From NCBI GenBank assembly GCA_965649765.1, contig OZ287748.1, forward strand, positions 34,720,001-34,784,000: a stretch of DNA of 64,000 nucleotides. The letters run 5' to 3'. This document shows positions 25,060 to 63,093 of the stretch, in pieces. The notes under the pieces were generated by a model that saw only the letters and a program-made list of their open reading frames with translations, had not been told where the DNA came from and searched no databases. Every line of letters starts with the position of its first letter. The stretch's first letter is position 1. The DNA is from Bispira polyomma (lineage: Eukaryota). The position numbers and the translations under genes were made by a program.

Positions 25060-25716
25060 TAAAAAGATGCTTCCACAGAGTCTAATAGATATTGCCAGAG
25101 GTCTTCAAGGTTTAGTTGCCTACATGCATACATAGATGAGTTGAGTCTGTTTTCAGGAACACATGGAATGTACCAAATGCCCTGGGGGCCATAGATGGGA
25201 AACATTGCCATTCAATGTCTAAGAAAAGGGACAGTCAATATTTAAACTACAAGGACTTCCACTCCATAGTAAAGCTGGCCTTGGTGAGTGCAAAGTAAAG
25301 ATTCCTGTGGGTCGACCTTGGATCTAGTGGGTCATGCTCAGATTACCAGATATGTATTAGGTCAGAACTAAAGGAGAAGATAGAAAATCAGTCTATCAAT
25401 TTCCCCCTGCTGAAGCCATAAGCCCTTTTAGACCTCCGTCCCCTACTTTATCCTTGAAGATGATGCCTTTGCACTGAAGACCTGGCTTATGAAACCCTTC
25501 TCCAGAGATGGGATGGACCAGAATGAGAGAATTTACAACTACCGGATTTCCCAAGGGAGAAGAGTGGTAGAGAATTCCTTTGGGATCTTAGTACTGAGGG
25601 GCAGGGTTCTTCTCTCTACCATGCAGCAAGAACCACCTGTGGTAGCCACTGTAACCCTAATCTGTGTCGTCCTACACAATAAGATGAAAACCACTTCTAT
25701 AAACGAAGCAATAGAG
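25060..25716 (+). pseudogene. PIF/Harbinger transposase remnant, copy 2, interrupted by E1
   Basis: WNVPNALGAIDG, DDAFALKTWLMKPF, ERIYNYRISQGRRVVENSFGIL; homologous to 17990-18837. Confidence 0.88.
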
Positions 25717-25963
25717 CAAGTCTTAAGTTAAGGTCACCCCATTTAATTTAAGTTAACCTTAACTATAAATAAGATGGGGGACTTAAGGTCACCTTAAGTA
25801 AAGGTTCTTTTACTTTAAGTTTAAACTTAAACAAAGGTTAACTTAAATATTTTAGTTTAAGGTTACCTTAATGTAACCCATTCAAGTTTAAAGTTTACAA
25901 TTAACTTTAAGTATGCAATATATATTAATAACTGTAGTTGAAATATATATATTAAATTGCCCA
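25717..25963 (-). repeat. E1 repeat B2 (3' end truncated)
   Basis: Direct repeat of 26891-27137. Confidence 0.95.
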
Positions 25964-26513: not shown

Positions 26514-26725
26514 CTTTGAAGGACTGCTCCCAGCAAACACTTATTGACAACTGAGGTTGGGGCGCTCCACTGCTGGTTTTCCCGCCCATACTTCTTGACA
26601 CTTAAACAGTGAGTGGGGGAGTCCATTATCAAGCCTAGGGAAAGAAGTGGGGGGTTTAGGTTTAAGTGGATTTAAATGTGGCAGCCACTTCTGACTGACA
26701 TCAAGTGCTGGCGCCCCTTGTACAC
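26514..26725 (-). repeat. E1 repeat A2
   Basis: Direct repeat of 32025-32236. Confidence 0.95.
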
Positions 26726-27137
26726 CAGTTAACAGGACAAGCCCCAGAGCAAGGCAAAAAGTGATATGAATAACACAGTAATAACAACACCAGTATAATA
26801 GTCATTGGGCATTTAATAAATGTCTAATCTAACATTAAGTATTAGTGTGTTATACATTTACTAACTATTTACACTATGAAGAAGGGTGACCAAGTCTTAA
26901 GTTAAGGTCACCCCATTTAATTTAAGTTAACCTTAACTATAAATAAGATGGGTGACTTAAGGTCACCTTAAGTAAAGGTTCTTTTACTTTAAGTTTAAAC
27001 TTAAACAAAAGTTAACTTAAATATTTTAGTTTAAGGTTACCTTAATGTAACCCATTCAAGTTTAAAGTTTACAATTAACTTTAAGTATGCAATATATATT
27101 AATAACTGTAGTTGAAATATATATATTAAATTGCCCA
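26726..27137 (-). repeat. E1 repeat B1 (full length, ends ...TTAACTG abutting A2)
   Basis: First 247 bp match B2. The ACTG end matches the B ends of E2, E3, the solo unit and the fragment. Confidence 0.85.
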
Positions 27138-27154
27138 AACACCATACTATAAAC

Positions 27155-28128
27155 CTAGTGTTGTATTATATTTTGTAGAGATTTGGCTACAGTGGAGGAA
27201 GCGTTGGGAGTAGACTGGAGATAAGCCCATACAGCGGATGATCTCCAGCCCCCATGGGCCATAATGGCTTGGAGTTCCACATTATTGTCAAAGGCCAGGG
27301 TCGCACCCAAGCGACGGAAGGAATGGAACCCAAAAGACTGAGGGTTGAGAGACATTGACACAATTATTTCCCTCAGAACTCGCCTGATTTTATAAGCAGT
27401 CAACGGCACTAACTGCCTATTGACTTTACACATAAATACTGGAGACTCATCTTGGTTTTTATTCTTTGCAAACATATACCTTAATGCAGAAATAGGGCAC
27501 AAATCCGACTTTCCCAATGTCGGCAGCTGGACCATGTGGTACTGGTTGTACTTCTGCAATTTTTTAGCCCAATTGAGTACTATGTGTACTCCAGGTGAAC
27601 CCCTCACAAAATCCTGGCAAGTGAGATGTCTCTCAGGATTGAATTGAGTAATACTAGTTGGGACTAGATTAGATAGACGGAAAAATCCGAAAGAAGCAGT
27701 GAGAAACAAAGCTTTGTAGACATATGCATGGGGAAATGCAGAAGAGTGGTGAATGATGGAAGTAAGGATAGGAAGAGTAATTATGCCCTTCAATCGAGGT
27801 GCATAAGGGGTAGAGAGAGAGAGGGATTTGAAAAACAATTTTATTTGAGGGTGAGAGATGTTTTGAATAGGCAGAAGCCAAAGGTGAAAGTGGTATTTAA
27901 TGGCTGAAAAGTAATTATGAATAGAAGGAGGTTTGAGGCCTTGCTGTGCTAGATACTCCACAAATTGCAACAAGAAATGAAGAGAAGAGATCTCAACTTC
28001 CCCAAGGAATATGGCAAATGCCAGAAACAATCTAATACAATTGGAGTAAGCCTTTTGTGTTCTGTCAGTAAAGGCCATTTCTAACCGAGAATGTGCTGCA
28101 TTGGTTAGGAAATTTTTCAGTGGTGAAC
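27155..28128 (-). CDS. E1 tyrosine recombinase; open frame extends 5' of the ATG at 28078 to a putative splice acceptor
   Basis: Catalytic residues present: FFRLSN (R), FHSFRR (HxxR), AHGGW (H), VWAYL (Y). Confidence 0.92.
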
Positions 28129-28141
28129 CTGAAATAGTAAA

Positions 28142-30013
28142 TTACAATGAATTATTTAATACAAAATGACTTTTGGTGACCACCCACCATTTCTTTTTAG
28201 CTAATTCATCATGCACTGCTACATTTTTCTGCCCTGGTAGGAGCATACGCGACAAATAATCAGCCTGTACTTTTTTAACACCAGGTATGTGGACTATGTC
28301 AAGTTTAATGTTGTTTTTTGCCATTTCAAGCCAAATTGATCTTGCCATGACCCCTAGCCCCTGATCATGAAACCTACCGGAGTTAAGTCCCGCAACGACT
28401 GCACCATTGTCGCACCACAATTTTACTGTAGAGTTTTTAAAACAATGACCCCACATACGTAAAGCCACTAATACGTTCCACATTTCATAATGCACTATTC
28501 CAAATGTTTCAGGTTTTTCAGATGGGAGAGCAGCAGCATATACATTACTGCCTCATACCCCCCCAATGCCCACCAGGGATGCATCCACAAATAACTCATG
28601 TACAGGTTCACTCTTAAGGTGCATTTCCACCACCCCGTTGAAAGTCGACAGAAATTGATGAAACCAATTTAAATCTGCTTTGAAATCCCTGGTGAGGATT
28701 ATTCTTTCACTGGGGTAGGTTTCTCTCAGTAATTTTAACATTCGGCTTAAAAACAAACGAGCTGGAATGACGCATCTGTGAACGTATAACAGTTTACCCA
28801 GAATTGACTGAAGTTCCCTTCTGGAACATTGGGTTTTATTTCTCCATTGTTTACACATAGTTTTAATTTGATCAAGCTTTTCTTCAGGAATTTTGAGAGT
28901 ACCTTTGTTTGCATTCACCAGTATGCCCATACACACCACCTCCTCTGCTGGGGGAAATACCTTTTTGGGGTTTATGGATAGACCGAGATACTCAATCAGA
29001 CTGTATAATTGATCAAAAGATTCATGGGCTTTTTCACTTGTTTCTATGGCAACCAGATCGTCTGTATAGTTCCATATATGGTATTGTTTCCTACTCATGA
29101 GGCGGCTTATACTGTCAGTCATCCATTCACAAACAGCCGTGCCGTGCTTATAACTCATCATCACTGCTAAATCAATATAAGTAAGATCTCTCCAACGCAA
29201 GCCTGTGTACTTATAATCTCCTGGGTCAATGTGCAGGTTTCGAAATGCGCGGGAGAGATCCAGCTTGTATAATTTAGCAGTGGGGCCAATTTCGTTTATG
29301 CGATCAACCAACATATCTATTGTGGGAAGTGTTAAAATGCAGTCTTGCCCATCATACACACCCTCTGTAACTGCACTATTAACAGATGTTTTATCATGTG
29401 GCCATGAGAGGTCAACAATTAGTCGCCTGGTATTGTCATCTTTAGGTCTGGTCATTACAGGTGAGCAGTGCAACTGCTTGTAAGGAATTGTATTAAAAGG
29501 ACCTGCAATTGCTTTGTGCAGACGCTCAGTTACAAAATACTTGTCCACACTGTCAGGGAATTGCAATGCACTATCATGATTGGTTACACTATTATTAAAA
29601 ACAAAACCCTCAGTTTTCATATCTAGGGGAAATCCGAATTCCAAATATTCAGGTAACAGGATATCCCCATCCCCTTTTAATACTTGTCGCCATGCTTTGA
29701 TGTTCAATTCAGAAGGGACAGGTATACGTGCCCCCAAGTAATTAGGGCACCCCAATTTGGTAACTTCTTCATGGGCTTTCACAGCCCACTCCTCAAGTGA
29801 GTTGAATTCTACATTGTTTCTGGCAATAGGAATTTCTCCAACGTGTTTATATATGCACATAAAACCAAAGTTGTCACTTGATTTAACACCTAGACCTTTC
29901 ATTCTACCTTTGCCTTTCAAGGGATTAGTGCTAGCAATTGCCTCACACTTTGAACTGTCATTAAGGGGTTCGCCCTGATTGTTAGGTTTGCTAACACACA
30001 GTTGATTTGACAC
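28142..30013 (-). pseudogene. E1 reverse transcriptase / RNase H, one premature stop at 28553-28555
   Basis: RRLIVDLSWP, LYKLDLSRAFRNL, YTDD, ELQSILGKL; RH motifs FVDAS, YEMWNV, WCDN, HIPG...ADYLSR. The two ORF pieces are in the same frame. Confidence 0.92.
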
Positions 30014-30572: not shown

Positions 30573-31784
30573 TCAGTTGTTAGAACCCTTGTGGAAATCT
30601 TTGGAGTAACTACTCCCCTTACACTGAGTCTCCCTGTGGAGCTGGATACGTTTGTCCTTAGTGTAGCACTTAGCACACGCATGTTTCAAGGTCAAATTGC
30701 CAAATATATGGTCATCACTCTGGCTGCAAGTGCCTTTGTTATAGGCTTTGCACATAACTATGTTTCCTTTACTGCTATTTTTTGAGTGAGTAGCACCCTT
30801 TTGAGAAGATTCGGATTGATTATTGTCCTTAAGAGTACGCTGAGTCAACCTGGCACGCAATTCATGTATTTCACTAAGATTATCCCAACTGATTTTGCCT
30901 TTTTCCATCTCAAGCAATAACTGACAGTGTGCACTTTTTACCGTGTACCAGGATGTTTCAAGTGCATCTCTCATGAGCTGCATCCCGTATTTTAACATGT
31001 TATCACGAATTTTGGCATTTTTCTCTTCATACACACAACCCATATACCCCTGAAACCACATGAGGGGGGTTAATTCCTCATAAGGAGGCTGTTTTTTACC
31101 AGCAATATTGTAACACAACTCATGGGGCCAATTAATTACGTGTTTTACATGATACTCAGATGTTTTTTGTAACCCAGATTTAAGTCTCTTACCATGTTCT
31201 GGTGAACGATACAGCTGAGATTTGTGACGTCGCAGTCTCTGGTCAACCTGGGCCTGGATCTGCTCATTGGTCTTTAGGAAGTACTGACTTGGTAGAATGG
31301 TGTCTTCCAGATCAGAGTCGTCTTGCTGCCTGGCATAATGTGGCTTGTGATGAGAATTTTTCTGCCTCCTAGTCTGTGGCACATAATCAATATAATCATC
31401 ACTGTCCTCCGAAGTATCCTGATGATAGCCACGACGTGGAGGGGAACTGTGTGAGGGAACTTTCACTGATTCTGCTTTCTTCCCTTTTTTAACTTCACAC
31501 ATATCACTTTCCAGTCTATTAAGTTTATCCAATATAAGGTCCAAGGTACTGCTCTGCTCCTTTCCCTCTTCGGTAACATCCTGCCTGGCTTCGTGTAACA
31601 AATTGTCTTTCTTCTTAGACTTGCCTGGTCTCACTGGTGTCTCTGGTTCTGCCTGGGGCTGAGCTCGCTTTTGTGCACGCGTCGCGGGGCCATTATCTTC
31701 CCCTGAGTCCAAAGCACACAATCTTCCAACGGGCCTCGGGTGGATCACTTGACATCTCTTGCAGTATCCTTTTTTGATAGGCAT
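30573..31784 (-). CDS. E1 Gag-like ORF1; likely start MPIKKG at 31784
   Basis: N-terminal CKRCQVIHPRPVGRLC, central KSG..WPH block, C-terminal Cys/His fingers (CKAYNKGTC..H; HACAKC..H); homologous to E2 and E3 ORF1. Confidence 0.85.
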   Translation of the reverse strand: MPIKKGYCKRCQVIHPRPVGRLCALDSGEDNGPATRAQKRAQPQAEPETPVRPGKSKKKDNLLHEARQDVTEEGKEQSSTLDLILDKLNRLESDMCEVKKGKKAESVKVPSHSSPPRRGYHQDTSEDSDDYIDYVPQTRRQKNSHHKPHYARQQDDSDLEDTILPSQYFLKTNEQIQAQVDQRLRRHKSQLYRSPEHGKRLKSGLQKTSEYHVKHVINWPHELCYNIAGKKQPPYEELTPLMWFQGYMGCVYEEKNAKIRDNMLKYGMQLMRDALETSWYTVKSAHCQLLLEMEKGKISWDNLSEIHELRARLTQRTLKDNNQSESSQKGATHSKNSSKGNIVMCKAYNKGTCSQSDDHIFGNLTLKHACAKCYTKDKRIQLHRETQCKGSSYSKDFHKGSNN

Positions 31785-32024
31785 TTTTATATATATCCAC
31801 TCTACAAATAGTCTGAGTAAAATCCATGATTTCTGTAACAATAACACTTCGAATTCTGCAGGTTATGCTTGTAAAATTAGGTACGAATATTTTAAAATGA
31901 TAAAAGAATAAAACTTCAGAAAGAAATCTGAGAATTGAACACGCCAGGCGTGGATAATTGAAGGTTATACGTCCCCTAATAAAAGGTTAAAAAAGCCATG
32001 ACAAGCATAAATTGCAGATTTCCA

Positions 32025-32236
32025 CTTTGAAGGACTGCTCCCAGCAAACACTTATTGACAACTGAGGTTGGGGCGCTCTACTGCTGGTTTTCCCGCTCAT
32101 ACTTCTTGACACTTGAACAGTGAGTGGGGGAGTCCATTATCAAGCCTAGGGAAAGAAGTGGGGGGTTTAGGTTTAAGTGGATTTAAATGTGGCAGCCACT
32201 TCTGACTGACATCAAGTGCTGGCGCCCCTTGTACAC
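32025..32236 (-). repeat. E1 repeat A1 (element 5' end)
   Basis: Direct repeat of 26514-26725. Confidence 0.95.
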
Positions 32237-32898
32237 ACAAATAACTTGTAATATAACTCACATACACACAAAAACTACTTGGTCCCCACACATGAAAGGT
32301 AAGCCAACATTCTAAGCAAAAATACACAAAAGTGCTGCGAACGTGATCAAGGTTCTTGTCCCCACATCATCTCTGGTAGCCCAATCCTCGATAAAAATGC
32401 CAGTCTACATGCATAATACTAGCACACAAACTATATACTTAAGTATTGTCACATTGTAATATTTATTGCATTAGGGCATATACCACTCACTTTACCTGTT
32501 GAATATGTCACCAGATCGAGCAGTTGTGATAAAAAAAATCAAGGCTTCTACAGATGTTATCGTTGTAGAGACATAGCCAAGGCCAATTAGATTGATGGTT
32601 ATTGCTGAGTACAAGTAGGGAGACTGCTAAGCTATATTATACCCCTGTGTGTATTGCCCTGAATTACGATGACCTAGCATTTATGAGGTGCTATGTAATG
32701 GCCCATTAGACTTTATGTCCTCACTTGATAGAGAACAATCCTCTGCCAATGTACATTTTATGCAAATATATTCCAACTGTAACATAAGGATACTACACAG
32801 ACAAGTGAACAAATATTTATCATTGTTAAGTGTTAGGAGTGCTCTGTTTAAATAAAGTATTATCCATGATGATTTACGGTAAACAGATCAATAAAAGA

Positions 32899-36262: not shown

Positions 36263-37129
36263 AGACCAATAAAAGATACAAAATGCCACACTGAATGAAA
36301 TAAATCAGATAACAGTAAGATTTACTTTTTATTTTTGCAAGCAAGCAATATTGAAGACAAGGATTAGGTCATTATTTTGTACAGTTTACAGATGGGCCAT
36401 TTCTGATTAGACTGAAATGCTTAAGGTGTTCATTTCAATTCTTGAAAGAATGTCAGTTGTATTTGTTGACCAATAATGCAGGCATTTGTCTCTTTATCTT
36501 CAACAACGTCTTATCTGATGATGGCTGTTTGATGATGTACAAACACAGTAATTCATAGTTAGTGTGGGATATGAATGTTTATGAGAGCTATAAAATTGAT
36601 TGTGTAAAGGTAAATGTCTTGGACCCCATTAAACCGTGTGAGAAAGAATTATAAGTTGGTATTTATATCAGCAAAACTGGACATTCAGTTCTTGGCTAGA
36701 GCGTTGGCACCACTAGATGTTAGTCCCAGAAGTGATACTGAATAAACTAACCCCCTTTCTTTCCCCCTAGGTGGGCTAATGACCACTGTTCTCTGTATGA
36801 GGACTTATGCCTGCCAGCCCTGGTTGGGGGCTATAAAAACTCCTGTTTTTCCAGGAAAATCATCAAATTTCATTTGCCTCACAAAGTGCTGCTCAAATTG
36901 TGTCTCAATTTCGGGGCTCTGCTTTTGCTACTACTCCAGCACTTTGAGCGAATGTCAAAATGCTTTAACAGATTTCAAATAAATTTTAATTATTTTAGTG
37001 TTTTATCGTAATTTTATTTGTTTATTTGTAACATATTTTAAATTTCAACAAATGCTCGTTGGAATTACTGTGGCAGAAAGAGGTTCCCAATGTGTTGTTG
37101 TGATTACGTGTTGTGTTAAAAGGGAAAAA

Positions 37130-38233
37130 TCTAGCAACGGCCTATTTTCGAAAGTGTGATAAACATCACACATGACCTGTGGATAAAAACTGTACTCCGG
37201 ATATAGCTGAACAAGAGTCTTCTCCCGTGTTAAATCATGGACGTGTTCCTGGTACTAAAGCGGCTGGAAATCCAGCTACCACAGGTCGGCCTCGCCAGCA
37301 GACTGAGTACACGGACACCGATGCAGTGTCATATACATGTGCAGAGGGATCAGAGAGGTAAGAATGTAACCTTTCCTGACACCAGACGTCGCCCCACGCA
37401 GCCTTCTCCTGAGAGATCGGGCTATGTTCCAAAAGCAAGTAGTAGGGTATGCCATAGCTCCCCTACCCGGACAGGCTATCATCCTCACAGTATTGAAGGT
37501 GATGAGACTATTATGGCTAATCGAGATTGGGAATGACTAATAGATGACATCAAATCTGAACATCGAGGGGGCCTCCCTGTTGAGAGAGGACGCCAGGTGG
37601 ATGACAGACGTGCTGATATCGGACAATTTGATCACCTTGACTCTGAAGATTTCTTATTACCTAGCCAGCAATATCTACGTACCAATGACTATACTTAAAG
37701 TCAAGTCGACGCGCATTTGCAACGTCATAAAAACAGATGGGCCTCCTCACCAGAGGAATTAGGTAAACTTAAGTCAGGCTTACAACGCACTGGTGAACAT
37801 ACTATAAAAAGCACATTAATTGGCCCCATGCAGTACGGGTTACAGTTAATTGAGGGATGCCATGGAAACTTCCTGGTATACTGCTAAAAGCGCCCATTGT
37901 GTGTTGCTCCTTAAGATGGAGAAGGGTAAAGTTGATTGGAATGATTTAAAATCAGCTCATGAAATCAGGGCTTATCTTACCCAGAGAACTATAAAACAAA
38001 GTAACCGTGATTCAAATACCACTGTTGCAAAAATAATGGGCAAAACTGTACCCTGTACGGTATACAACAAAGGTACCTGCACCCAGACAGGTGATCACAC
38101 ATTTGCAGGTATGACATTAAAACATGGTTGTTAAAATTTTTTCAGTTCTACCAAGAAATTCAGTACTTATAGGGAGATGAGGGGCCAGAAAATGGCAAAA
38201 GCCTCCAGCCAGCTCCAAAAACATAAGTATTAA
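37130..38233 (+). pseudogene. E2 gag remnant
   Basis: SPEELGKLKSGLQRTGEH, MRDAMETSWYTAKSAH, CTVYNKGTC match E1 Gag; frameshifts and an internal deletion at about 37830. Confidence 0.85.
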
Positions 38234-38599
38234 GTCAAAAACTTTTTGGAACGCAGCTTGAAAGTTTAAATTCTCAAAATGTCAATTTTGTGGGAAACGA
38301 AAAGGGCAAACATGGGGTAGTTAAGGGAATAAAACAAAACAACCCACCCACCACTACCCTTACAATTGACCCTAAAAAAGTAAACAATGTCTCTAAATGT
38401 CAAGAAATATGTCTACAAAAAATATGTCAGGTGGCACAGCAAATCTCTTCTCCCCCACAGAGGGGGGGGGGGGGATATTGTTGTATTACCAGTGTCTCCA
38501 AAGTTCAATTTGGTTCACCATTCATCTCAAGTCAATTCAGCTTAACCTCGGGGCAGTCCCCCTTCAAAGCAACATAAAAATGACATTTGTGCCCCAGTG

Positions 38600-39945
38600 C
38601 ACCAAACCCATGACAAACAAAAGGGTCACTCTTTCTTATGAAAAGGTTAACAATTATGGTTGCCCTAATTACCTAGGAGCTAGATTGCCAGTCCCTTTAG
38701 AGCTAAATATCCTTCAATAGAGAAATTTATTGAGAAATGACCCCAATGTTGTGCTCCCAGAATATATAGAGTTCGGTTTCCCCTTGTGTATACGGGGCTG
38801 CAGTGACCTAGTGGTTAGCAAGCATTGCACTTCACAATCACTGGTTTCTCACCTCTGGACAGCGTGAGTAGGAAAGGTGGTAGTTCCTTACTGTTGGCCA
38901 CTGGTTTCAGTGCAGATCCTTGACCGACTGTATGCAGTGTTTCCTCCAGCGTTTCCAACTACCCGTCTCAATATAACCTACTAAAAGGTACTAGAGTGGA
39001 TGTTAAATATCCAAATTCAAATTCAAATTCAAAACCCCTTGTGTATACAAAAAGAAAGCTTTGTGTTTAATACTGCAGTAAAAAATCATGACTCAGCCAT
39101 ACAGCATCCACACAGTGTGGATGAATATTTCGAAACAGAAAGACTTCACAAGGCCATAGCAGGCCCTTTCAGTGTCCCCCTTTTGATAAATTGCACATGA
39201 CCCGGCAAAAGTGACAACACTCGTAGAATCATTGTAGACTTGTGTTGGCCTCACAATAACTCTTCTGTGAATAATGCTGTATGCAATGGGGTGTATGATT
39301 TTCGACTTACTCTTCCACATATAGACATGTTAGTTGACAAAATTAATGAACTTGGCTCTAATTGCCTATTAAATAAAATCGATTTATCTAGGGCATTTAG
39401 AAATTTGCGTATAGATCCTGCTGACTATAAATGTACTGCCCTTAATTGGAGAAATCAAATATATATAGATCTCTCTGTAATGATGGGCTACAGACATGGC
39501 ACAGCCTTATGTGAAATGGTAACTGATTCATTACGTTGGCTCATGAATACTAAAGAATACCATATCTACAATTACATCGATGACGTTTTTGCGGCAGAGA
39601 CTCCTCAAAAATAAAACAATTATTTGACACGCTATATGACCTCATTCAAAAGTTAGGACTTCCCATCAATGCTAATAAGGTGGAAACCCGGCAGAATCAA
39701 TCACATGTATGGGCATTATAATCAATGCGCGCACGGGAATATTGAAAATCTCACAACAGAAAATGTCAGATATATATTGGTAAGGACGTTCCAGCTGTAC
39801 CAGAAGACAGCTCCAGTCCTTATTAGGAAAACTCCTATATATACATAGATGCGTCAAACCTGCCCAGCTTTTTCTCAACAGAATGTTGGCACTACTACGA
39901 GATTCCTATCCAAAATGTAAATATAAACTTCAGATGATTTCAGAA
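38600..39945 (+). pseudogene. E2 RT remnant; SINE inserted, RNase H deleted
   Basis: GCPNYLGARLPVP, NHDSA, KIDLSRAFRNLRIDP, YIDD; sequence jumps directly into YR at about 39945. Confidence 0.85.
38794..39034 (+). mobile_element. tRNA-derived SINE with (AAATTC)n tail and 14-bp TSD, inserted in E2 RT
   Basis: A-box TGACCTAGTGG; TSD CCCCTTGTGTATAC at 38780-38793 and 39035-39048; same family as 55776-56031. Confidence 0.93.
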
Positions 39946-40836
39946 GAGCCATCTTCATAGTCTCTTACCTACAGGGTATTAGATTATATTTAGCCCTCTC
40001 TGTGGCTTTATCTCTGTAGGATTACACAACCATAAAATATATATTAGTTTTTCTAGAATACTTAGCTCAATAAGGGCTTAAGCCCCCTTCTATTGAACAT
40101 TTATATCTCATCAATGAAATTTTATTTACAATTATGGGGTGTCTCCACCCTTCCATTTAAACACCCTCAGATTAATTTGTTCTTAAAATCTCTCATTCTC
40201 TCTACACTTTACAACCCTCGGTTGAAGTCAATCATTTCTATCCCCATACTTACTGATATCATTAATCAATGTGAAACCTTCCACAATGCACACGTGTATC
40301 AAGCTATATTTCTCACTGCATTTTTCAGTTTCTTCAGACTGTCTAATTTAGTCCCAACCTCTCTATCCACATTTAACCCCATTAGACACCTCACAGTACA
40401 AGACCTCATATGGGGGCATCCTGGGGTCCACATTATACTCAGATGGGCTAAGTACCTTCAGTGTTACAACCAATTTCATGTGTTACATTTTTCATTTATC
40501 CAAAACTCCCTTTTATGTCCAGTCACTGCTCTACGTGTGATGTTACCTATAAACAAAACAAAACTTCATCCTCTTTTAACTGAGGCATCCCAATTCTCAA
40601 TACAAAATCGGAAAAGTCTTCATCAAATCATCATAAGGCTTGGCTTGAATCCCCAGGCCTTCACATTTCACGCATTCCATTGCTCAGGAGCGACTTTTGC
40701 CTTCAAGAATGATGTCGACCTCCAATCCATCATAGTGCATGGGGGTTGGCAGTCTCAAGCCGTCTGGGCTTACCTTAATTCTACACCAAATGCTGCAGCA
40801 ACAGTAGCTACTTCCCTCCAACATAACCTACAATAA
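39946..40836 (+). pseudogene. E2 tyrosine recombinase, degenerate
   Basis: FFRLSNLVP, FHAFHCSG (HxxR lost), HGGW, VWAYL. Confidence 0.9.
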
Positions 40837-40886
40837 CACTACAACACCAAGTCTGAGCTCTTTGGGGCAATCTTTCTTTATATATA

Positions 40887-43324
40887 CAGTCTAACCCACT
40901 TATCACAATCTCGGTAATTTTGACTTCCTGCTAATCTCAATCATACACCTTCAGTCCCAACCTCATTAAATATAATAATATAAGGAAACTGGGAGATATT
41001 TCGATCTAAAATGATGGCATTTACTGGTTATTTCAATGAGTTTTTCTTAAGTTCAATGGGGATTTGTTTACTTTGTTTACGTAGAATATGGAGGGATTTG
41101 GGGGGAAAATCAACATAAAAACACCTTTATCATTTGTAGAAATAATGTATAACTTACATCAGGTCAAAAGTCAAACAAAACATGAGTTTCTCCGGTCCTT
41201 GGCACTGACATAACATTACCACACTGCCATTTTCATAATGAGAAGCCACATTGTTTGGTTTTGCGCCATTTTTATCAATAGCCGTAAAGAAGTCTGCACA
41301 CTGCATATTGTGCTGGGATTAAGGTACACAGCAAATAACGGTGTTCCAATTGCAATTAGTGCGCAAATCTTTCTCTATATAAACCCCCACATTTTTCTCA
41401 CTGGTATCAGTGTTTAATTGAAATTAATCACAGACATTTTGATCAATTTAGTGAAATGATGGCTACAAAATGTAAATTAAACTTAAGATCAATTGAGGTC
41501 AAGTACAATGCTTTATGTGCTGTGGAGAAAGGTGTCAAGACAAAATCAGAGATAGCCAGGGAGTTTGATGTTCCTTCTAACACTTTGTCAACTTGGCTAA
41601 AAAATTCTGATAAAAAAAGCCTATGAGGGTGAATGTTTTGGAACTTCCAGAAAAAATATGAGACTGGCAAAATATGAAGATGTTGAGAAAGCTTTGTATA
41701 ACTGGCTGCTTGTTGCTAGAATTAGTAATGTCCCTGTATCTGGCGAAATTCTTAAAAAAAAGGCTGAACAATTGGCTGTGAAACTTGGTGAGACAGAGTT
41801 TAAGTGCAGTAATGGATGGATATGCAGATTTAAGGAGAGACATTCTATTGTGTACAAGTCAGTGCAAGGAGAGAGTAAGGACGTAAATCAGGATGTTGTG
41901 AAGGAGTGGCATTCCAGTGTTTTACCAAACATTCTTAAGGATTACCAGACCAAGGATATCTTCAATGCAGATGAGACTGGCCTATTCTTTAAGCTGTTTC
42001 CTAACAGAACTTTCACATACAAAGGGGATGCATGCAGTGGGGGAAAGAAGTCCAAGGAAAGGCTAACAGTCATGGTCTGTGCCAACATGGATGGCTAAGA
42101 GAAGCTCAAGCTTCTAGTCATTGGTAAAGCCTTGAAGCCTCGCTGCTTTAAGAATGTTCATACTCTACCTACAGACTACACAGCAAATAAGAAGGCTTGG
42201 ATAACTATACATTTTCATAGATTGGTTGCATAAACTGGACAGAAAATTCCTTGCCCAGAAGAGCAATGTTGCCATGATTGTTGATAACTGCCCACCTCAC
42301 CCCCATGTGAAAAAGCTCAAGGCTATCAAGCTTTATTTTCTGCCACCCAATACAACCAGTGAGAAACAACCAATGGACCAGGGCCTGATTTAAAATTTAA
42401 AGGTCCACCACAGGAAGCTTGTTGTGACCAGACATTTGCAGGCCATTGATGAAAACGAAGAAGTCAAGCTGAGTGTATTAGACGCCCTGCACTACATTAA
42501 GCAAGCTTGGGATGTTGTCAAACCAGAGACAATCTCAAACTGCTTCTTCCATGTCATTTACAACGAGAAGCTAAATGACAGCACTGACAATTCTGACAAG
42601 GTTGACACTGGTATTAGTGCAGAGGACTTTGAGGAGTATGTGAGTGTTGACAGCGAAGTCAATACCACAGAACAAGTGACAGATGACACCATCATTGACT
42701 CTATTAAAGACATTGATTCCCAGGAAAATGAAAGTGACAATGAAGATGATGAAACTGAAGTCCAAATTCCAAGTTTTAGCCGTTGTCTCTCCATATGTGA
42801 TGAACTTACACTTTTGATTCAGTCCAGAAATAACAGTTTTGAACAATATGAGAATTTAGTAAACATTGAGAAGTTTCTGAGAAATGAAATGGCCATAAGC
42901 AAATCTCAATCAAAAATTGACAGTTTTTTCACCCCTGCAAAATGTGATTAGTGGTGTGTGTCCTTTTAGTGACATTTGTGGTTTAGTATTTGCCAAGCCA
43001 TGCGGTTATAAATCGTTTTATTGATTGATTATAAATAGTGTTGTTTGTACAAAGTTAAACTTGCTGTAATGTATATTTTATTGGATTTATGGTAAAAATA
43101 AAAGATATTGAAGGTTAGTATTGCTTTATTTCTCTTATATTCTAAGTGCAGTCCCTCGAAATGCATATTCAATGTATTTGGTTAAAATCCTTTATTATCG
43201 CCGATGGACTCGATCTGCACACTAGTTTTTATTCTTCCCAGGCCCCAAATTGTTATTTCGAGTTCTGGTTATGTCGAATTACTCATTCTAGTCCCCTGAA
43301 TTTCGAAATAACGAGGTTAGACTG
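40887..43324 (+). mobile_element. Full-length pogo/Tigger-type DNA transposon (2438 bp) inserted in E2 repeat B
   Basis: TIRs CAGTCTAACC..TTAT / ATAA..GGTTAGACTG, TA on both sides. Confidence 0.92.
41456..42951 (+). pseudogene. pogo/Tigger (CENP-B/TIGD-like) transposase, DD30D, disrupted
   Basis: N-terminal HTH (SEIAREFDVPSNTLSTW), CENP-B HTH (FKCSNGWICRFKERH), FNADETGL, IVDNC...QPMDQG with 30 residues between the second and third D; stops at about 42096 and 42390 plus frameshifts. Confidence 0.92.
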
Positions 43325-45365
43325 TATACGTTTTATAGCATTATTTTGTCAATTATATGTTTATAGTATCATCTTTTATTATTATTATCTTGCATTTTTA
43401 CATAAATTAATTAATGCAGTGTTCTTACATAAATTAATTACTGCATGCTCTGTACCTAGTTATAAACTTGCTTCTAGTATAAATCATCTAGCTTATAATT
43501 AAAGTGTAATTATAGTTATAATGAATGATATTACCTTATAATTAAAGTGTAATTATAGTTTGAATTAATCATAGCTAAATGCATAATGCGTCACTTAACT
43601 GATATGAAAATAATATGGTTATAGTATTGTAAATGTTTATTAAGCACAGCTAAGTGCATTAGTCATTAACTTAACTGTGATAATTACATATTATTTTCTA
43701 TCAAAAGCTTGTATATATACTAGTGTTAGAAAACTAATTTTAGAACGGAGATATGTAGAATTAATAAAAGCCCAAAGAGTGCCTTTTTAATGACTTGGTG
43801 TTCCCTTCTCTTGCTGCTCATACTCAAACCAGAAAGCTGGATTATATTACAGGTACTTAACCTTCAATGGAACGCACATGGACTGTATCTTAACAGTTTG
43901 TATTAAAAACAAAGGAGGTTGCAGTTTTTCTTTCTGTTTTATGTACAAGTACAAATACGTCTGTGATAAATAAGATTTTAAATATAGTATCAATTAAAGA
44001 AGTAACCCTCCTTTGAAAGGAAGGCTACCTTGAGGTGGTGCAGTTGTAACAAATTAACAGTTATAAATCGAATAAGAGGTTTGATTTCAGGTTTGAACAA
44101 TAATAATCATTGCCTTTCTTGCAGTAAATGAGTTTCATGTATAGCTTAAACCATGTCTATAGGGACAAGAAAGTCATTGTTATATATTGCTTTTTATCCT
44201 GTGGCATTTTTTTCAGAGTCTAAGTGTATTCAAAGAGCTACTGTTGAAAGAAATTGCTTAGGGGGGTTGCAATGGGGCTATTCTTCCCAAGTTCTGCTTT
44301 TGCTTCTTTTGTCCATCTCATTTTTTGTGTGTATGAAAATACCCTTGTGGAAATGAGAATTCACTGGAAGCGATGGGTTGAAACACATATTAATATATAT
44401 GAAAGTTAAAGCCAGAAAAAAAAAAACAACTAATTTTTCCAAATTTGGCACTTTTGCGCTTTGGCAAAGGGATGCACTTTACCGAGTGTCCATATACTTG
44501 TCAGTATATCTTTTAGAACAACTTTCGATTTGTTGTGGTCTTGTAACATAATGAAAAGGGATACATACCCAGTTTTAAACATTATCAACGCTAATATAGC
44601 ATAGACAGTGCCTCTCCTCTGACATTGGTCTTAAATTTGACCTTAGGAATGCCCAAGCGAAGATTCTATGGTTGGGGATATTAGTTTTATTTTTATATTA
44701 TATGTTATTTTGTACTACATATACAGACTAACTAAAATATAAGATATAAGGGTCACTGTCTATTTTAAAGTAAGCTGCCTCAAGATAAGGTGAACCTAAT
44801 TTAGAGGTGGTTTTGAGTTTAAGTTCAGCTTATATTTATGAGCTTTTGTTAATGCCTTCACGTCTGGTGGTCTAAATCTAGATTACCAGAACGCATATGT
44901 AAGGCCATCATCTATCACAGTAAATGGAAGAATTTTAATTTCTTTTGACACGTCTTCGTACGTCATTTGTCTGGTGTCTTAGTACAGGCCTTAAAAGTAG
45001 AGGGGGTAATTGACTAGGCTGTAATTGGCCAATTCTACGATGCCCTCTTTGTTTATGCAGACAATGGTAATCCGTTAAATGGCAGGAACTCCCAATTAGC
45101 CACAAAATTATCCACACAAATCTCTAATTAGATTTACCTACTAGTGGACTGATGGACTGATAATCAAAAACTTATACAATGCTGGGAGTAACGCAGATTT
45201 ACGTCAGGTGTACCATAAAAGTATACATGGTAAAGTACAAGTAATAAAAGTAATCTTCAAAAAACTGAAGGTCAAATGAAAGTCCTTGTACATGAAATAA
45301 ATATTTGCTTGATAACCAATATTTTTAGCCATAGATTTAAATATGTAGTTAGTGCAAGGTAACAC

Positions 45366-46537: not shown

Positions 46538-47520
46538 CAGTCCCTAGCACTCCAAAGTCAAGATTAACCAATTTATGCGGGTATATATGTATGTTTATTT
46601 ATAAAAAAAAGGAAAATTGTGTAAAATATAAGTTCTATACCACTAGCTATGTACATTTTTTGGTAGAGTATACAATAATAAAAAAAGTTACAACATTTAA
46701 TACTTAAGCTGAGGTCAGATACTTATATTTCAGTTTAAGTTTATGGTTATACTTAACTTTTAGTTTTGAGTTTTAGTTTAAGGTGCTCTTAAACTAATGA
46801 CAAAACCCTGACCAGAGAAGTTTTAGGTGATTCTAGATTGAGCGGTCACCAAATTTAACTTAACCAGTTTAAGGTTACCTAACCCACAAGTGTGGATTCT
46901 GAATTTGAGATGGCAATGTTTTAATACTCAGTTGACCTCAACTTTTACAATAGTTTATAATTTTTGACAATAATAAATGCAAAAAACCTCTGTTAAAACA
47001 CCGAGGACTATAACATAACTGTTTAATACTTTAAAAACAAGGGTTCAGTGAAGCTGTGCATTGTCATATGACTTATAATGTTTAAGCAAATTCCTTACTA
47101 ATAACCTTGTAGCAGAATTAGATGCGATTCAAGACATGACATACTTTTCTATTGAGCTCATACCGTTTAAATGTCTCTGTTGAGCATAGGAGTATGCTGT
47201 ACACCTCAATCCTAAATGGTTGTTTCTTGGACTAGCTTATCTAACACTAACCTACTCCAAGGGAATAGGGTGGGTGGGAAATCAGAAAAATTCCTGCCAC
47301 ACTTGTCTGTGGCTAAATTCAAACTAAACTTATTTTCTAATAAGTCTCTTGTCCTTAGGGTCTCATCCAATCAGATTCAGTTACCTGAATTTTCACTTAA
47401 CGACACGGGGTTTGTTTATTATTGACTTAAGTTTCTACCTGTGCTGAAAACAGGCAGGTACTCCCATAGATTAAAGGTCGTGGACGACTGACAATGGCAA
47501 TGCCTTAACACTGCCCCGAT
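46538..47520 (-). mobile_element. Solo A-spacer-B unit of an Ngaro-like element (~980 bp, non-coding)
   Basis: Absent from copy 1 (empty site about 23227). On the minus strand it starts ATCGG like E3, has the TCAGTC motif and a CCCACCC..TTCCC tract like repeat A, has a TTAA/GGTTACC-rich segment like E1 repeat B, and ends GGGACTG. No TSD. Confidence 0.75.
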
Positions 47521-50784: not shown

Positions 50785-51975
50785 CTATGACTATATAAGG
50801 TAGATACTAAGGCATTATCACTATTGAAATTTCAATTGATGTTTGACTTTTGAGGAAACCACTGGGTTACCTCAAAATAAAATGAAGGTCCTCACTTAAG
50901 TCAATAAATAAATTATGACTTGTGGATAAGTATTATATGGTTAGGCTCTGGATTGCTGCAGGAGCCGGAGCCCACTGACCGTGTGGAGGATCCTGTCTCC
51001 TAAACCCCCCCTGCTCTACACGTTTAGGGGGCCAGGGTTGAATAGGAGCTCTGGGAGGCAGGACCCTCTGCTAGGCGATTAGGTGCCCTAGGACCGGGGC
51101 TCCTAGCCCTGGGGTGGGACGGAGCATAACTGAAATAACTGACAAAATGGAATGTTAAATAAATTCAGAAGGCAGTTTATGGCTAGATTATGACTTGACG
51201 AATAGGGAAAGTGTAATAGTTTATGGCATGTTTATGAACAGCCGTACATGGTTTCTAGACAGAAACTTGGTTGGTGCAGAACCGAGCTTAAATGAAAAGA
51301 CAGACAGAGGGACTGTTATACAGGGAAGTCACAAAAGTGGTATAGACTGAAGTTATGACCAGACTAATAGAGTAAAGGGATGTCAAACTATGGCATGTTT
51401 ATGGGCAAAAGTACATGACTTTAAAATATGTGTTTATTAATGCAGTCTGAGGCTGCACATGTGTAAATATAAACCCAGAAGGGGAATACATCACTAACAC
51501 AGGCATGTGCCATGTATGCAGAATAATTGAATAATGTACCAATATGTATGTATGTGAAGTACTAGATGTTCAAAATTCTATGTTTTAGATAGGCTAGTCC
51601 TAATTGTGTGAACTAAGATTGAATATAATATAATTTACGTAATAGCAGTAAGCATGAAGAGATACGAATGGTTATGGGTAATCCACTGTAGGGTTACTAT
51701 TTGTATTACTGTTATGCATTTTATTGGTTGTTACTTGCCTGTTGGGGCATTAAAATTTTACTTATCTTAAAAATTTTAAGCAATTTTATGATATGTTAAT
51801 GTCAATTGTAGAATATATATATATGTATGCTAACATGTAAAAATAAACACTCAATCGAAATCTTTTATTACCTCTTCACCATCGCAATAAATATATCAGA
51901 GCTGGAGATCAAACTTGACCTTTCTCAACTCATGACCTTGTAGCTTAAAATCTTGTTTTCAACATTTGGGGACTG
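50785..51975 (+). mobile_element. 3' fragment (putative spacer plus repeat B) of an E3-related YR element, flanked by a perfect 52-bp duplication
   Basis: 51740-51975 aligns with E3 62862-63093 (TTGGGGC..TAACATGTAAA..CGAAATCTTTTA..TTGGGGACTG). Duplication 50733-50784 = 51976-52027. Confidence 0.8.
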
Positions 51976-57282: not shown

Positions 57283-57571
57283 ATCGGTAAGCAGGACACC
57301 TTTAGGGCACTGCTACATCAGTCCACAATCCAAAGTTTAGGCTATACCTTAAGTTTAATTTTGCTACAACGTGTATTATGCTACTTTTCTGTCCATCATT
57401 GGATAAGCCATATAATTACTAGAACTCCAACTTTCCATATTTATTATGAATTTGAAGTAACAACAAGGAGATTTAAAAAAAAAGGAAAATTTTATTTTAA
57501 AAGAGTACTTTACATTGTTTTATCTTTTAACGAGTTTATATATTGTGTCACACAGTTAGTGCTTGGTATAA

Positions 57572-59068
57572 TTGTTCACTCTGGGAAAAACAACAAAAGA
57601 ACCACTTCACACGGTTGTAAAAGCAAAGAAACCGTCCACACGTAGGAACAAGGTGTTAAAGATCACAGGGGACACAGTCGCTGATCAGGTATCCACTTCT
57701 TTCTCTACAGGCTTACAAAGCCCCCCCGACAGCGTTACTCTGGGTCAGAGCACTACACACCCAGTTACTGATAATATCACCCTCGGGCAGTCAACGACTG
57801 ATAACTCGGGTTCTAGCGAGATGCTGGCCATACTGAGAAGGCTAGAATCATCTAATATTTCCCTGTCTCAGAGTATTGAAAGAGTAGAAGCTAAAATGTC
57901 CTCCAGTACGCCCTCTCTTAACCCATTCACAGAGTCGACATCAGAAACAGGTCAACACACTCACTTGCAAAACAATGGGTTAGGCGCCAGTCTCACCATA
58001 CCGACTACACTTAATACATTGACCATACAGCAGAGTTTAGGCGCTAGGTGCAACTCCTCATTACAACCACAATCCCAGAGTATGAACCAATTCAGCTTAG
58101 GCGCCATACACAATGCAACGGTACAAGGTCACTTGCCACAGCCACATATGCAAAACCAGCTTGGATCGAATGCATCACACATTACTCCGTTGCCGAACAG
58201 CATACAGAACCCGCTAGCTGCATTACATACCACTCCGTCGCACAACCAGCTGGCATTTCCTTCACAGTCGTGATTGGGGGCGACACAGATCCCACAAGCA
58301 CAACAACTTGGCATCAATGTGCTGGACTACCAAAAGGATGGCATTGTGCCTAGTGTTGACGCCTTAAGAGCCATTCCCAGTGTGTAGTCAGCCGTGTCAA
58401 GACAGTTGGCTGAATACGAGGCTTTAGCCCAAAGACACTTATTGCAAGGTAAGGTCAACCCTCGAACCAAATCCGGACGTTTCAACAGCACTGATGTGAC
58501 TACAGATGATGCTCAGTTTCGGTGGCCGAATGAGGGCTGGGTAGGGGGCTCTGCGCGCAAGAGGCCAACATACGACACACTTACATTACCCCAATGGGCT
58601 GCACTGCAGATTTTTAATGCGATGCAAGTACAAGATAACTCACTCATGCGAAGTATGATGTCACAACTTGTCCACGCACTTCGGGACGCCGCTTTGTTGC
58701 CATGGCCTGTAGTCAGGACAGCCTGGGCCCTCAATATGAAAGAGGTAGAGGAGGGTCGGCTGTCCTGGCTAGACACCACACAATGGGTGCTCAACAGGAT
58801 GAACGCTTCACAGCTCACACTAGCAAATAATGGCCACAGTCACACTGCAAACAACAACCAAGGTGGGGGCATGAATGAGTCCAAGGTCATTTGAAAACTC
58901 TTCAATAACGGAAAATGTTCTAGCAAATCAGATCATGGTAACTACAAACATAATTGCTGGTACTGTAGTAAGGTATTGGGTAAGGAGCAAAATCATCCCG
59001 AGTTGAAGTGCTATCGAGCTAACGCCAATAAGCAGTCTGAAAACTCAAGTAGTACAAGTATTAAATAG
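57572..59068 (+). pseudogene. E3 gag remnant
   Basis: QGKVNPRTKSG, RWPNE, RPTYDTLTLPQW, EEGRLSW, and C-terminal Cys/His fingers after a premature stop at 58892. Confidence 0.8.
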
Positions 59069-60159
59069 GAGGCCATTTGGCTAGCAGAATTGCAGCAGGT
59101 AAATTGTCAGTTGAATAGTAGGGGTATGAAGAACAGTCACATAATTGCTATAAAAGATGTAGATAATGGTGAAAAGCAGCAATTAACTGACGTTATGAAC
59201 AATTTGACTTGTGTGAGCACAATAAGTAAAGTAGTGATAAAACAAATATTAAACCTAGAACACAGATATCCATAAATTGCAATGCAACTGATGTAAAAAA
59301 TAAAATTAAAATGAATAGTAACGAGTACATTAGAAGTCATAATATAACCAGTGTAAAAGGTAAGACTGATGTGTATGACAATGTGTACATACAAGCTTTT
59401 TCAGGTTTGAAGCATTATGTACCACATTTGGAAAGCTTGTGTGCAGTTCAAGGTCACAAGGGTCAGTATTATAAAGTCAACAATGCTAATGATCTAGAAG
59501 TCAATGACTTCACTATGAATAGCAGCAACAAAACACAAAAAGTAAGAATAGATGTAACTAATTGGAAATTTATAGAGAAAATTAGGGGAGCAACGTTCCC
59601 AGTAGTTTATATTTCCAGTCACAATGACCTTATAAAAGTTTTTTTTTACCAAAATTGGGATAATGTTGCTGCTGTTCATACTTACACTCCAATCGAGTTT
59701 AGTCCTAATGGTTTATTGCAAATTTTACATTCTTTCACAGTGATCATTGATTATGATAAGGAATTAGTAAGGGGAGAACATGTAATTTGCAAACCAGTTT
59801 CTGCAATGGACAAGAGTAAAGCTAAAGATACAAAAATGTTTTATGATAAAGATTGTGGGTAGTTTAAAGTCATATAACATTGATTACACTGGTTACATGA
59901 AGGAGATCATTGATTCTACGATAAATGATTGTGGGTTGATTGGTAATGAAAATTCTAGTGTTATTACTAACACATGTATTAAAAATGACAGGAGGACAGT
60001 AGACACGACTAACACAACAAAAAAAGGTAAGACTCATCTGCTAAGCGAAACAGTCACCAACCCGTCTTCTTCAGAACAACTTAAGGAAATTATGGCAACT
60101 GCCAGTGAACACGTGACAAGGAATCATACTGACTTCAATGACTCTGGCAAAACTATAGG

Positions 60160-61874
60160 GTTCTTAGCTCTTGCTCCCACTGAGTTTGAATTTATTGGGC
60201 CTGATAAACAGCCCATTAGCATTAAAGAAATTCCAGAAATTTTAAATATAGCTATGGCTACTAGAGACACAGGTTTACCCAACTACAGGCAGGCCAGAAT
60301 ACCAATCAGTTCTGGCCTGCAGGTGGAAGCTTGGGAGAAACTGCTACAAAACTACCCTGATCAGTTGTTATTGCAGTACATAAAATTTGGTTTCCCTCTA
60401 TCCTTAAGTCAACCTGATAAACATTACAAACAGTAAGGTACACAATCACTTCTCAGCTTTACAACACCCACAGGCTGTAAAGCAATACTTAGACACAGAA
60501 AAATCATTAGGAGCCATTTTAGGGCCAGTTAAAGAAATTGAAGAAATTCATTATAACTGCTCACCACTTCTCACGAGGCCTAAAGATATCGACAAGCGTC
60601 GGGTTATTTTAAATTGATCTCATCTGTACGGTGCTTCACTAAATGATAACGTCAACAGACAAGAATTTGACGGGGTGCCTTTTGCATTAAAATATCCAAA
60701 TATATTACACAGGCTATTAGGAACACCAAGGACCCAGTACTGTTCAAATTTGATGTTGCGCGAGTGTTCAGAAATTTGCTTGTAGACCCAGTGGACGCAG
60801 TCAAACTAGGCATTTTCTGGAACAATCAATATTATATTGATCCAGCTATTGCATTTGGCTGGGTACACAGAAGCGCGGCCTTTCAGCGTTGCACAGACGC
60901 AATTACGTCACACATGGCAAATCGAGGCTTCAAAATTTTGGATACATAGACAATTATGTTTGCGTTGCGTCACATGAACACGCACAACTCGGGTTTGAAA
61001 TGCTATACGAGTTAATGGAAAAATTGGGTTTACCAATGAACGCAGATAAATTAACTCCCCCTACTAAAAAATTAACGTGTCTTGGCATTGATTTTGATAT
61101 TATAGCAGGCACTATAAGTATCCAACCTGACAAGGTAACTGAAATACATAACACATGACTCGAAGTTTATAATAAAAATATATTTCCAGAACTAAAATTC
61201 AATCACTTCTGGGACAGCTACTCTACATCCATAAATGTGTTGCTCCTGCGCGTATTTTCATAAACAGGGTTTTGTCAGTGTTCAGAAATAACAATACCAA
61301 TATAAAATTTCTGGTCAATACTGAAATGAAGGCGGATATTCAATGGTTCATAAAATTTCTGGAAAAATTCAACGAAATGACTTATATTGAACACAATGCC
61401 ATACCTCACAGTAATGAATTACATTTAGACGCATGCCTCACTGGATTCAGGGGAGTATGGAACAACGAAGTATATGCAACCCAATTTTATGATATTTTCA
61501 ATGGTGAATTGACAATTGTTCATTTAGAAATGTTGAATATCATTATCGCTTTAAGAATTTGGGCCGAGAAGTGACAACACCAGAAACTGAGCATCAACTG
61601 TGATAACATGGCTGTGGTTCTGGTAGTCGAATCACAAAAAACTAGGGATAAATTTTTAGCACTATGCTTAAGGAACATATGGCTCATTACAGCAGAATAT
61701 GACATTACTCTTGAGATCAAACACATTCCTGGTAAAAAGAATATAATTGCAGATGCTCTGTTCAGAATTTATTCAGTTAAAAGTTCTAATAGCTACACAC
61801 TACAAACAGTTAGGGATAAATTTACATGGCTAACAATTCCCATTGAGTACTTTAATTTAAATCTAACTATTTAA
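60160..61874 (+). pseudogene. E3 RT / RNase H remnant
   Basis: GLPNYRQARIP, FGFPLS, NHFSA, CSPLLTRPK, AFGWVH, YIDN, HLDACL, HLEMLN, CDN, HIPGKKNIIADAL. Confidence 0.88.
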
Positions 61875-61880
61875 TTTCAG

Positions 61881-62896: not shown

Positions 62897-63093
62897 AATT
62901 TTTAGCTCTTGTATACTATATTAAGCTCAATTGTAAAATATACATACTAACATGTAAATAATAAATGCTCAAACGAAATCTTTTACTACCTTCTTTATCA
63001 CAACTAATAGATCTTGACCCTAACAACTTACAACTTGACCTTTGGATCCATGACCTCCCATGCTATGAATTGAATTACACCAGTTGGGGACTG

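Follow-up and report, generated by a model that had tools for sequence, protein, structure and literature searches.

Where the B repeat of a Ngaro-type tyrosine recombinase (YR) retrotransposon is joined to its A repeat, the sequence can fold into a two-tier hairpin, which is conserved and covarying in 11 families. The crossover point always lies at the 3′ end of the 5′ arm of the outer stem. Such a foldable sequence arises at the internal B1|A2 junction and also at the B2|A1 joint of a replication intermediate. This hairpin is probably the site of the recombinase or a part of it. The further proposal that it would be the core recombination (att-like) site of Ngaro elements, used in folded form, stands at about even chances on comparison of sequences. 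To our knowledge, the insertion mechanism of DIRS, Ngaro and PAT elements has been open since 1985, and the site of the recombinase was never defined. In a full-text literature search, which did not extend to Goodwin & Poulter 2004 and Poulter & Butler 2015, no account of such a hairpin at a Ngaro junction was found, and an earlier mention is possible.

Ngaro-type elements and their split repeats

The window, i.e. the whole 64,000-nt stretch of DNA analyzed, belongs to an assembly of 1.035 Gb in 75 contigs, which was searched for sibling copies. The YR retrotransposons in the window (E1, E2, E3, a solo element and a remnant; Table 1) are Ngaro-type. E1 has the architecture A1-[ORFs]-B1|A2-X-B2, in which 550 nt of X separate A2 from B2, and its ORFs follow the order gag-like, reverse transcriptase (RT) fragment and intact YR. 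B1 matches B2 at 99% (27137-26888 and 25963-25714, respectively) and runs on to 26726, abutting A2. The B2 of E1 is without the last 162 nt, including the ACTG end; other copies of the family have a full B2, their B measures 412 nt, and B2 normally ends at the same ..ACTG. The same three proteins are encoded by E2 and E3, with YR identities to E1 of 52 and 36%, respectively.

Domain searches were consistent with this classification. The RT of E1 matched RVT_1 weakly (E 2e-6, below the cut-off), and its intact homologues scored 43–45 bits, above the cut-off. The six catalytic residues of the YR (Table 1) were invariant in 9 sequences, with Pfam Phage_integrase matches below threshold. With its ORF intact and this hexad conserved, the E1 enzyme looks active as judged from its sequence. 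Split direct repeats (A1-[ORFs]-B1A2B2) were found downstream of the YR gene in E1, L092, L095, L098, L099 and L103, in a variant in which A2 and B2 are separated by 49–1800 nt of X. No methyltransferase domain, which is present in DIRS/PAT, was found in Pfam scans of the pol ORFs at E ≤ 0.01.

Segment 16455-23317 is a diverged paralogue of 23315-47637 (77–95% identity) and was the source of empty sites. E1, a LINE-like insertion (about 32899-36258), E2 and the solo break up the latter copy. Because the paralogous site 20241|20242 is empty, the limits of E2 (36691-43885) could be defined and no target site duplication was found.

The A starts carry the right half of the hairpin. In E2 (36691-36726), an inner repeat CTAG/CTAG is accompanied by TAGTCC. 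In E3, the inner stem is GTAAGCAG/CTGCTAC, plus CAGTCCACAA. The solo has GGCAGTG/CATTGCC and then CAGTC, and a related real junction is present in L099. A covariance model built from 15 representatives (R2) matched the A1 start of E1 at 32195-32251.

Table 1. Positions of the elements, repeats, ORFs and hairpin parts in the window
Feature	Position	Strand	Remarks
E1 B1|A2 junction hairpin	26691..26732	-	from sequence and sibling copies
E1 hairpin, outer 5′ arm	26732-26726	-	TTAACTG; crossover 26726|26725
E1 hairpin, 5-nt spacer	26725-26721	-	
E1 hairpin, inner stem	26720-26717 with 26705-26702	-	CAAG/CTTG
E1 hairpin, loop	26716-26706	-	contains GGCGCC
E1 hairpin, 4-nt spacer	26701-26698	-	
E1 hairpin, outer 3′ arm	26697-26691	-	CAGTCAG
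E1 repeat A1	32025..32236	-	first 46 nt are spacer, inner hairpin and 3′ arm (right half of the site)
E1 repeat B1	26726..27137	-	412 nt, end AACTG
E1 repeat A2	26514..26725	-	99% identical to A1 (32236-32025)
E1 repeat B2	25714..25963	-	first 250 nt of B only; stops after AAGACTTG
E1 YR ORF	27155..28078	-	307 aa; R134, K172, H252, R255, W278, Y286 conserved among homologues
E1 RT ORF fragment	28553..30013	-	
E1 gag-like ORF	30573..31847	-	
E2, single-unit A-int-B	36691..43885	+	B end GGACTG at 43885
E3, single-unit A-int-B	57285..63093	+	B end TTGGGGACTG at 63093
Solo A-X-B element	about 46538..47512	-	B end GGGACTG
E3-like A-X-B remnant, 5′-truncated	50961..51975	+	end TTTGGGGACTG

Real junctions in the genome share one end and one fold

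A sequence-only reading of the window had claimed that all intact B ends terminate in ACTG, and this holds for the B1 of E1, E2 (43885), E3 (63093), the solo (46538) and the remnant (51975), the last four reading ..GGACTG. The E1 junction, which is the sole real one within the window, also reads letter for letter as that reading gave it (minus strand, 26732-26691). On the other hand, the start that it assigned to the A of E3, ATC, proved to be two flank bases plus a variant first base, and A in the E3 family starts with T-GGTAAGCAG.

The genome was then searched with the A starts of E1, E3 and E2, which gave at least 90 loci. From these, 19 real B1|A2 junctions were recovered in three family groups and their subfamilies. 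B ended in ..ACTG in all 19, mostly as GGACTG, with TTGACTG in E1 proper and TTAACTG in the copy of the window. The B2 of the locus, where present, ended at the same nucleotide, and A1 started at the base following the ACTG of the junction. The right end of copies always kept ACTG. Sibling copies at other loci of the genome have real B1|A2 junctions, and these show the hairpins of E2 and E3, which the sequence-only reading could only reconstruct.

The alignment of these 19 sequences was tested with an imposed outer helix of 11 pairs and an inner helix of 5 pairs. Paired cells amounted to 79%, versus 25–47% for slid partners, and the covariation score was 0.39 versus a maximum of 0.22. The inner pairs differed by clade (CAAG/CTTG, CTAG/CTAG and AGCA/TGCT), with four of the five changed on both sides between clades, so that here too the sequence varies and the pairing is kept, as had been proposed. 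Bulges were present, e.g., an extra A in the inner stem of E3, and varied across families.

Some features of these copies were noted in addition. The copies at L093:3925-11811 and at G000 C11:27516022/27521617/27523051 contain one A-X-B unit more (A-int-B|A-X-B|A-X-B), and their junction copies are perfect; A-X-B solos are abundant in the genome. Recombination at the junction site, or unequal homologous exchange, would give such extra units, single-unit copies and solos. A TG was common to the B end and the A1 start, with a single TG at the junction, in all five copies from three families (ends of L092, L093, L095, L103 and L104), and a TG was likewise shared in 6 of 24 E3-like copies (A1 flanks of L032-L051). 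E2 and several old copies have other bases in the first 3 nt of A1 (in E2, CTT in place of GGG). A model of a 3-nt overlap or heteroduplex for this variable start was rejected, as the CTT of E2 is absent from its target and from the consensus of the family.

The design is conserved in independent families

A search with the E1 YR returned homologues at 32–42% identity. The contigs of 12 were examined, 11 from ENA assembly ERZ22147071 and one from ERZ26167708. Clear split direct repeats were present in six of these families, and their junctions all had the same design. The outer arms were family-specific. P0004 has a perfect outer stem of 14 bp with a 5′ arm ending in CTACTG; P0009 has the arms CAACTG/CAGTTG; and P0007 has the 5′ arm CGACTG with two G.T pairs. 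In P0018 (GCACTG/CAGTGC) and P0023 (GGACTG/CAGTCC, related to the solo of the window), the inner stems are perfect over 7 and 9 bp, respectively. P0024 carries GCAATG/CATTGC. In six further families, from two other data sets, the z scores of the minimum free energy (MFE) ranged from -2.3 to -8.1.

The same structure was present 200 nt past the YR stop codon of L107, a metagenome contig whose YR is 39% identical, with the arms CCACTG/CAGTGG, pairing extending to 17 bp and a z of -5.2; this junction was placed only by its fold and its position after the YR gene. L110 showed a candidate stem of 10 bp 173 nt past the YR stop, at a junction position unsupported by repeats. No hairpin was found on folding the junction of the more distant element L102 (16789|16790).

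Scans with the covariance models R1 (three clades) and R2 found only known junctions and A1 starts, and neither matched the elements without split repeats, L091, L096, L097 and L100-L102. Brute-force pairing of candidate B ends with A arms in loci without split repeats was discarded for too many chance hits, with only L102 (first element) and L096 as plausible candidates. A scan of a viral contig collection gave no relatives, a metagenome scan gave short contigs only, of which one (L107) was usable, and an Rfam search gave no match at the junctions.

Taken together, the families come from this genome, ERZ22147071 and one metagenome contig, and all belong to one YR clade (27–42% identity). In all 11, the end of B pairs with a stretch 28–36 nt into A, with an inner hairpin between the arms, which confirms the complementary arm that had been noticed inside A. 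The B end is ACTG and the A arm starts with CAGT in 10 of them; the remaining one has AATG(TG) and CATT. The base preceding the CAGT arm is always T. The structure at B|A consists of an outer stem of 6–17 bp, the 5′ strand of which ends in ..ACTG, an interior loop of about 5 × 4 nt, an inner stem of 4–9 bp and a variable loop. When only Watson–Crick pairs were allowed, the geometry was constant, the interior loop typically having 5 nt in its 5′ strand and 4 nt in its 3′ strand, and the terminal loop measuring 4–15 nt.

Two observations concern the terminal loop. T(C/T)A(A/G)GG occurs in the inner-hairpin loop of three related families (the solo at about 47490, L098:9631-9636 and L099:5604-5609), and the loop of E3 contains TTTAGGG; the shared motif may be a sequence-specific contact. 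The palindrome GGCGCC in the loop of E1 (26706-26716) has no such counterpart in other families.

The arms of the hairpin covary

Counted from the cut, positions 1, 2 and 4 of the outer stem are invariant (G.C, T.A and A.T). Position 3 is C.G, or A.T in P0024. On the other hand, position 5 occurs as G.C, C.G, T.A, A.T and G.T, and position 6 as G.C, C.G, T.A and G.T. The sequence-only reading had proposed covariation across families as a check, and the result was positive. Ten cognate arm pairs were scored at positions 5–12, leaving out the conserved 4-bp core. The cognate arms scored 51.5, versus 31.5 ± 4.8 for swapped arms, and this value was reached in 2 of 100,000 permutations. The duplex energy of the arms was -95 kcal/mol for cognate and -60 ± 7 kcal/mol for swapped pairs. 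Moreover, RNAalifold, run without structural input on 15 representatives aligned with plain MAFFT, recovered both helices (6-bp outer and 4-bp inner helix), and 6 of the 10 pairs were compensatory.

The hairpin of E1 in the window, in contrast, is the weakest case, with 4 + 2 bp, a z of about 0 and no place in the MFE fold. The siblings L011 and L012 have a G at position -5 and an outer stem of 7 bp, whereas the window copy has an A and hence an A.C mismatch; this mutation accounts for the missing hairpin in its MFE fold. The pairing claimed for E1 is present, but it is no more stable than shuffled sequence, as z was +0.5 for the sense (top) strand and -0.5 for the antisense (bottom) strand with dinucleotide shuffles. 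With the same shuffles, the sibling L012 folds as proposed at a z of -0.1, E2-like junctions gave about -1, and E3-like junctions gave -2.5 (-3.5 to -4.3 with mononucleotide shuffles).

These values bear on a neutral origin, in which the palindrome would be due to chance and have no function. E1 and E2-like hairpins are no stabler than shuffled sequence, and an inner stem of 4 bp is expected by chance in about 30 nt. However, chance does not account for compensatory changes in 11 families from three data sets and for cognate pairing matched so rarely in the permutations, and we regard it as scarcely credible.

The crossover lies at a fixed position of the structure

In each of the 10 families that have split direct repeats, one nucleotide of B1A2 marks both the A1 start and the B2 end, namely the inner end of the outer stem. 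Because the B|A boundary is defined only by the ends of integrated copies and takes the same structural position in every family, the structure is tied to the recombination step.

The hairpin could instead act at the RNA level, where the B1|A2 hairpin would fold in the genomic transcript and serve reverse transcription (recognition by RT or Gag, priming, template switching or packaging), the coincidence with the crossover being secondary. Every full-length transcript contains the B1|A2 junction, and the fixed interior loop could bind a protein. Both strands were folded, as had been suggested, and both fold in the further families; the sense strand was slightly more stable in nearly all families (15 of 16 cases with DNA parameters and most cases with RNA parameters). 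G.T (G.U in RNA) adjacent to the helix outnumbered A.C on the sense strand by 17:3. On the other hand, the bottom strand also folds significantly, Rfam offered no match, and the G.T excess is weak once composition is considered. Moreover, an RNA element leaves unexplained why integrated copies start and stop at one fixed structural nucleotide in 10 families. We therefore consider the RNA-level role unlikely.

The spacing of the arms disfavors an unfolded duplex site

A single protein that binds both arms on duplex DNA would also be expected to make them covary. In that case, GGACTG and CAGTCC would be inverted recombinase-binding arms (a terminal and a subterminal inverted repeat) on a double-stranded circle, with the intervening DNA bent or looped. 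YR sites such as loxP, FRT and dif as a rule have inverted arms that co-evolve with their recombinase. For this order of elements, the standard model assumes a duplex circle (PMC7192593, PMC3266345), and recent work on DIRS-1, in which the intermediate was single-stranded, still assumes one for integration (PMC7192593). DIRS1-like junctions are palindromic, because the ends of the inverted terminal repeats abut.

The arms and the cleavage at an arm/spacer boundary are shared with loxP, FRT, dif and the attP core, but the spacer there is 6–8 bp, and the Ngaro arms lie 28–36 nt apart unless the DNA folds. Since this distance is too large and too variable, a loxP-like duplex site is unfit. The spacing of the arms is incompatible with a fixed duplex geometry, whereas the stem/loop/stem geometry is constant. 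No second arm-like sequence was found 6–8 nt past the cut when the sequences were inspected for a canonical duplex core. Moreover, the nested family-specific inner inverted repeat, the constant interior loop and the variable loop would have no role on an unfolded duplex. These results make the duplex site improbable.

A proposed folded site and its probable reactive strand

In the folded-site proposal, the element-encoded recombinase would exchange strands at the end of the 5′ strand of the outer stem (ACTG|). Its two binding boxes would be the outer and the inner stem, separated by the interior loop as a spacer, in the way that IntI recognizes a folded attC. Folding would join the arms and make the length of the loop irrelevant, giving box, spacer and box with the cut at a box/spacer boundary, a layout common to all YR core sites and, more particularly, to a folded attC. 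Either single-stranded DNA or a cruciform extruded from a duplex circle could supply the fold. The sequence-only reading had suggested a folded site of this kind, and what stands of it is a conserved, covarying, bulged hairpin with a fixed crossover and a spacing unlike that of a duplex core site. Against it stand the thermodynamically unexceptional hairpins of E1 and E2-like copies and the lack of a hairpin in L102.

The reactive strand would be the sense strand. With a cut at ACTG| and the canonical polarity (3′-phosphotyrosyl, from arm into spacer), the sense-strand hairpin is the one expected to be acted on; if the antisense strand were the folded one, the corresponding cut would be expected about 30 nt into A. 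The lean toward the sense strand thus comes from YR polarity and the G.T bias, the latter being weak evidence. Strand choice from G.T versus A.C was dropped as a criterion, as the sense strand is G/T-rich and composition explains most of the bias.

The only experimentally characterized single-stranded cDNA of this order, that of DIRS-1, is antisense, and it can complete retrotransposition when transformed into cells (PMC7192593). Folded single-stranded cDNA, which the sequence-only reading named as a possible substrate, is a candidate only; polarity points to the sense strand. Either Ngaro differs from DIRS-1, or a cruciform on a duplex circle is used, or the antisense strand is used with an unusual polarity.

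The single-stranded state of DIRS-1 cDNA, which is mostly linear and in which the internal complementary region (ICR) is essential (PMC7192593), also fits an end-pairing device. Here, the intermediate would be linear and single-stranded, with the 3′ end of its B2 paired to the arm that A1 contains, and the panhandle would align the ends at a nick, ACTG|N, as a self-splint like the ICR of DIRS-1. The outer stem forms only between the B end and A, and the nick would lie exactly at the element ends. Moreover, the 10 A-A pairs 5.6 kb apart among the E2-like copies listed (best 40 matches) were all A-int-B|A-X-B and none was permuted, which is unexpected for a duplex circle because it would have two equivalent junction sites. 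However, end pairing requires the cDNA to end where the element ends, and the split-repeat model makes no such prediction. A plain nick is not something that a recombinase can seal, and the conserved inner hairpin and fixed interior loop stay unexplained. The device is rather improbable as the role of the structure.

If the folded site is used, integration could proceed through an attC-like single strand, the sense strand by polarity: it would be cut at ACTG|, one strand would be exchanged with a duplex target, and replication would resolve the product. By analogy with integrons this route is conceivable, and we hold it only tentatively, with the chances against it. Flanks of about 40 insertions showed no target consensus beyond a frequent TG in the left and right flanks.

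Comparison with known recombination sites

Integron attC sites are recombined by IntI as folded bottom-strand single-stranded DNA. Like them, the Ngaro junction is an imperfect inverted repeat with bulged bases, in which an unpaired spacer separates two stem boxes below a variable terminal loop. The structure is conserved and the sequence is variable yet complementary, except for a short core at the base of the stem (ACTG / T-CAGT in Ngaro). In both, the crossover is on the 5′ arm of the strand that folds, where the outermost box meets the spacer, and the Ngaro element ends there at ACTG|. Unlike attC, however, the structure is that of a eukaryotic retrotransposon and is shorter (about 45–75 nt), its targets are not one fixed attI-like site, and its single-stranded substrate is hypothetical.

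The attP(+) hairpin of CTX phage is used by XerC/XerD. It likewise builds, from single-stranded DNA, a recombinase site that is absent in that form from the duplex. CTX relies on host recombinases and a specific dif target, whereas the Ngaro recombinase is element-encoded and its targets are many.

The circle junction and the ICR of DIRS-1 were reportedly described by Cappello in 1985. DIRS-1 belongs to the same order and shares with Ngaro an internal copy of the joined ends, a self-complementary junction and the absence of target duplication (PMC7192593; PMC3266345). A short motif is common to junction and target in both, a trinucleotide in DIRS1-like elements and often TG in Ngaro. The cDNA intermediate was reported to be single-stranded for DIRS-1 (PMC7192593) and may be so for Ngaro. 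The self-complementarity of DIRS-1 follows trivially from its inverted terminal repeats. The repeats of Ngaro, on the other hand, are direct, which makes its hairpin a separate, selected feature; moreover, about 30 nt of A, including the inner hairpin, precede the right arm.

A covarying structure bounded by the crossover point gives a candidate minimal site of about 45–75 nt and predicts both the scissile bond (ACTG|) and the reactive strand. Whether a duplex circle or a folded single strand is used thus becomes a question at the scale of oligonucleotides. The hairpin can also serve as an annotation signature for exact Ngaro ends, and the families, each with arms of its own, may be a source of compact recombinase/site pairs. 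If attC-like single-strand integration is true, this would be the first folded single-strand recombination site beyond bacteria and their phages.

Other features of the window

The B2 of E1 stops at 25714, 162 nt early, right after a look-alike of the GGACTG cut motif (Table 1). This early stop could be a recombinase-made deletion or the use of a pseudo-site.

At 18831-19167 (minus strand), the paralogue holds an unrelated 337 nt exactly where E1 sits in the other copy. The insert starts with GGGGCAGTG, like the A of the solo family, and ends with TTTGGGTGCTG, like a B end, and by its sequence it resembles a mini A-B element that has degenerated. Either two insertions struck this site, or E1 took the place of an element already there.

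The target of E2 (36675-36690) reads AACTG-6 nt-CAGTT, an inverted repeat of 5 bp with loxP-like spacing that ends exactly at the insertion point. The empty paralogue reads AAGTG at this site. This is a single case, and the repeat may be due to chance.

LINE-like ORFs with RVT_1 were found at 8559-11243 and 33509-35029, the first also with an endonuclease domain.
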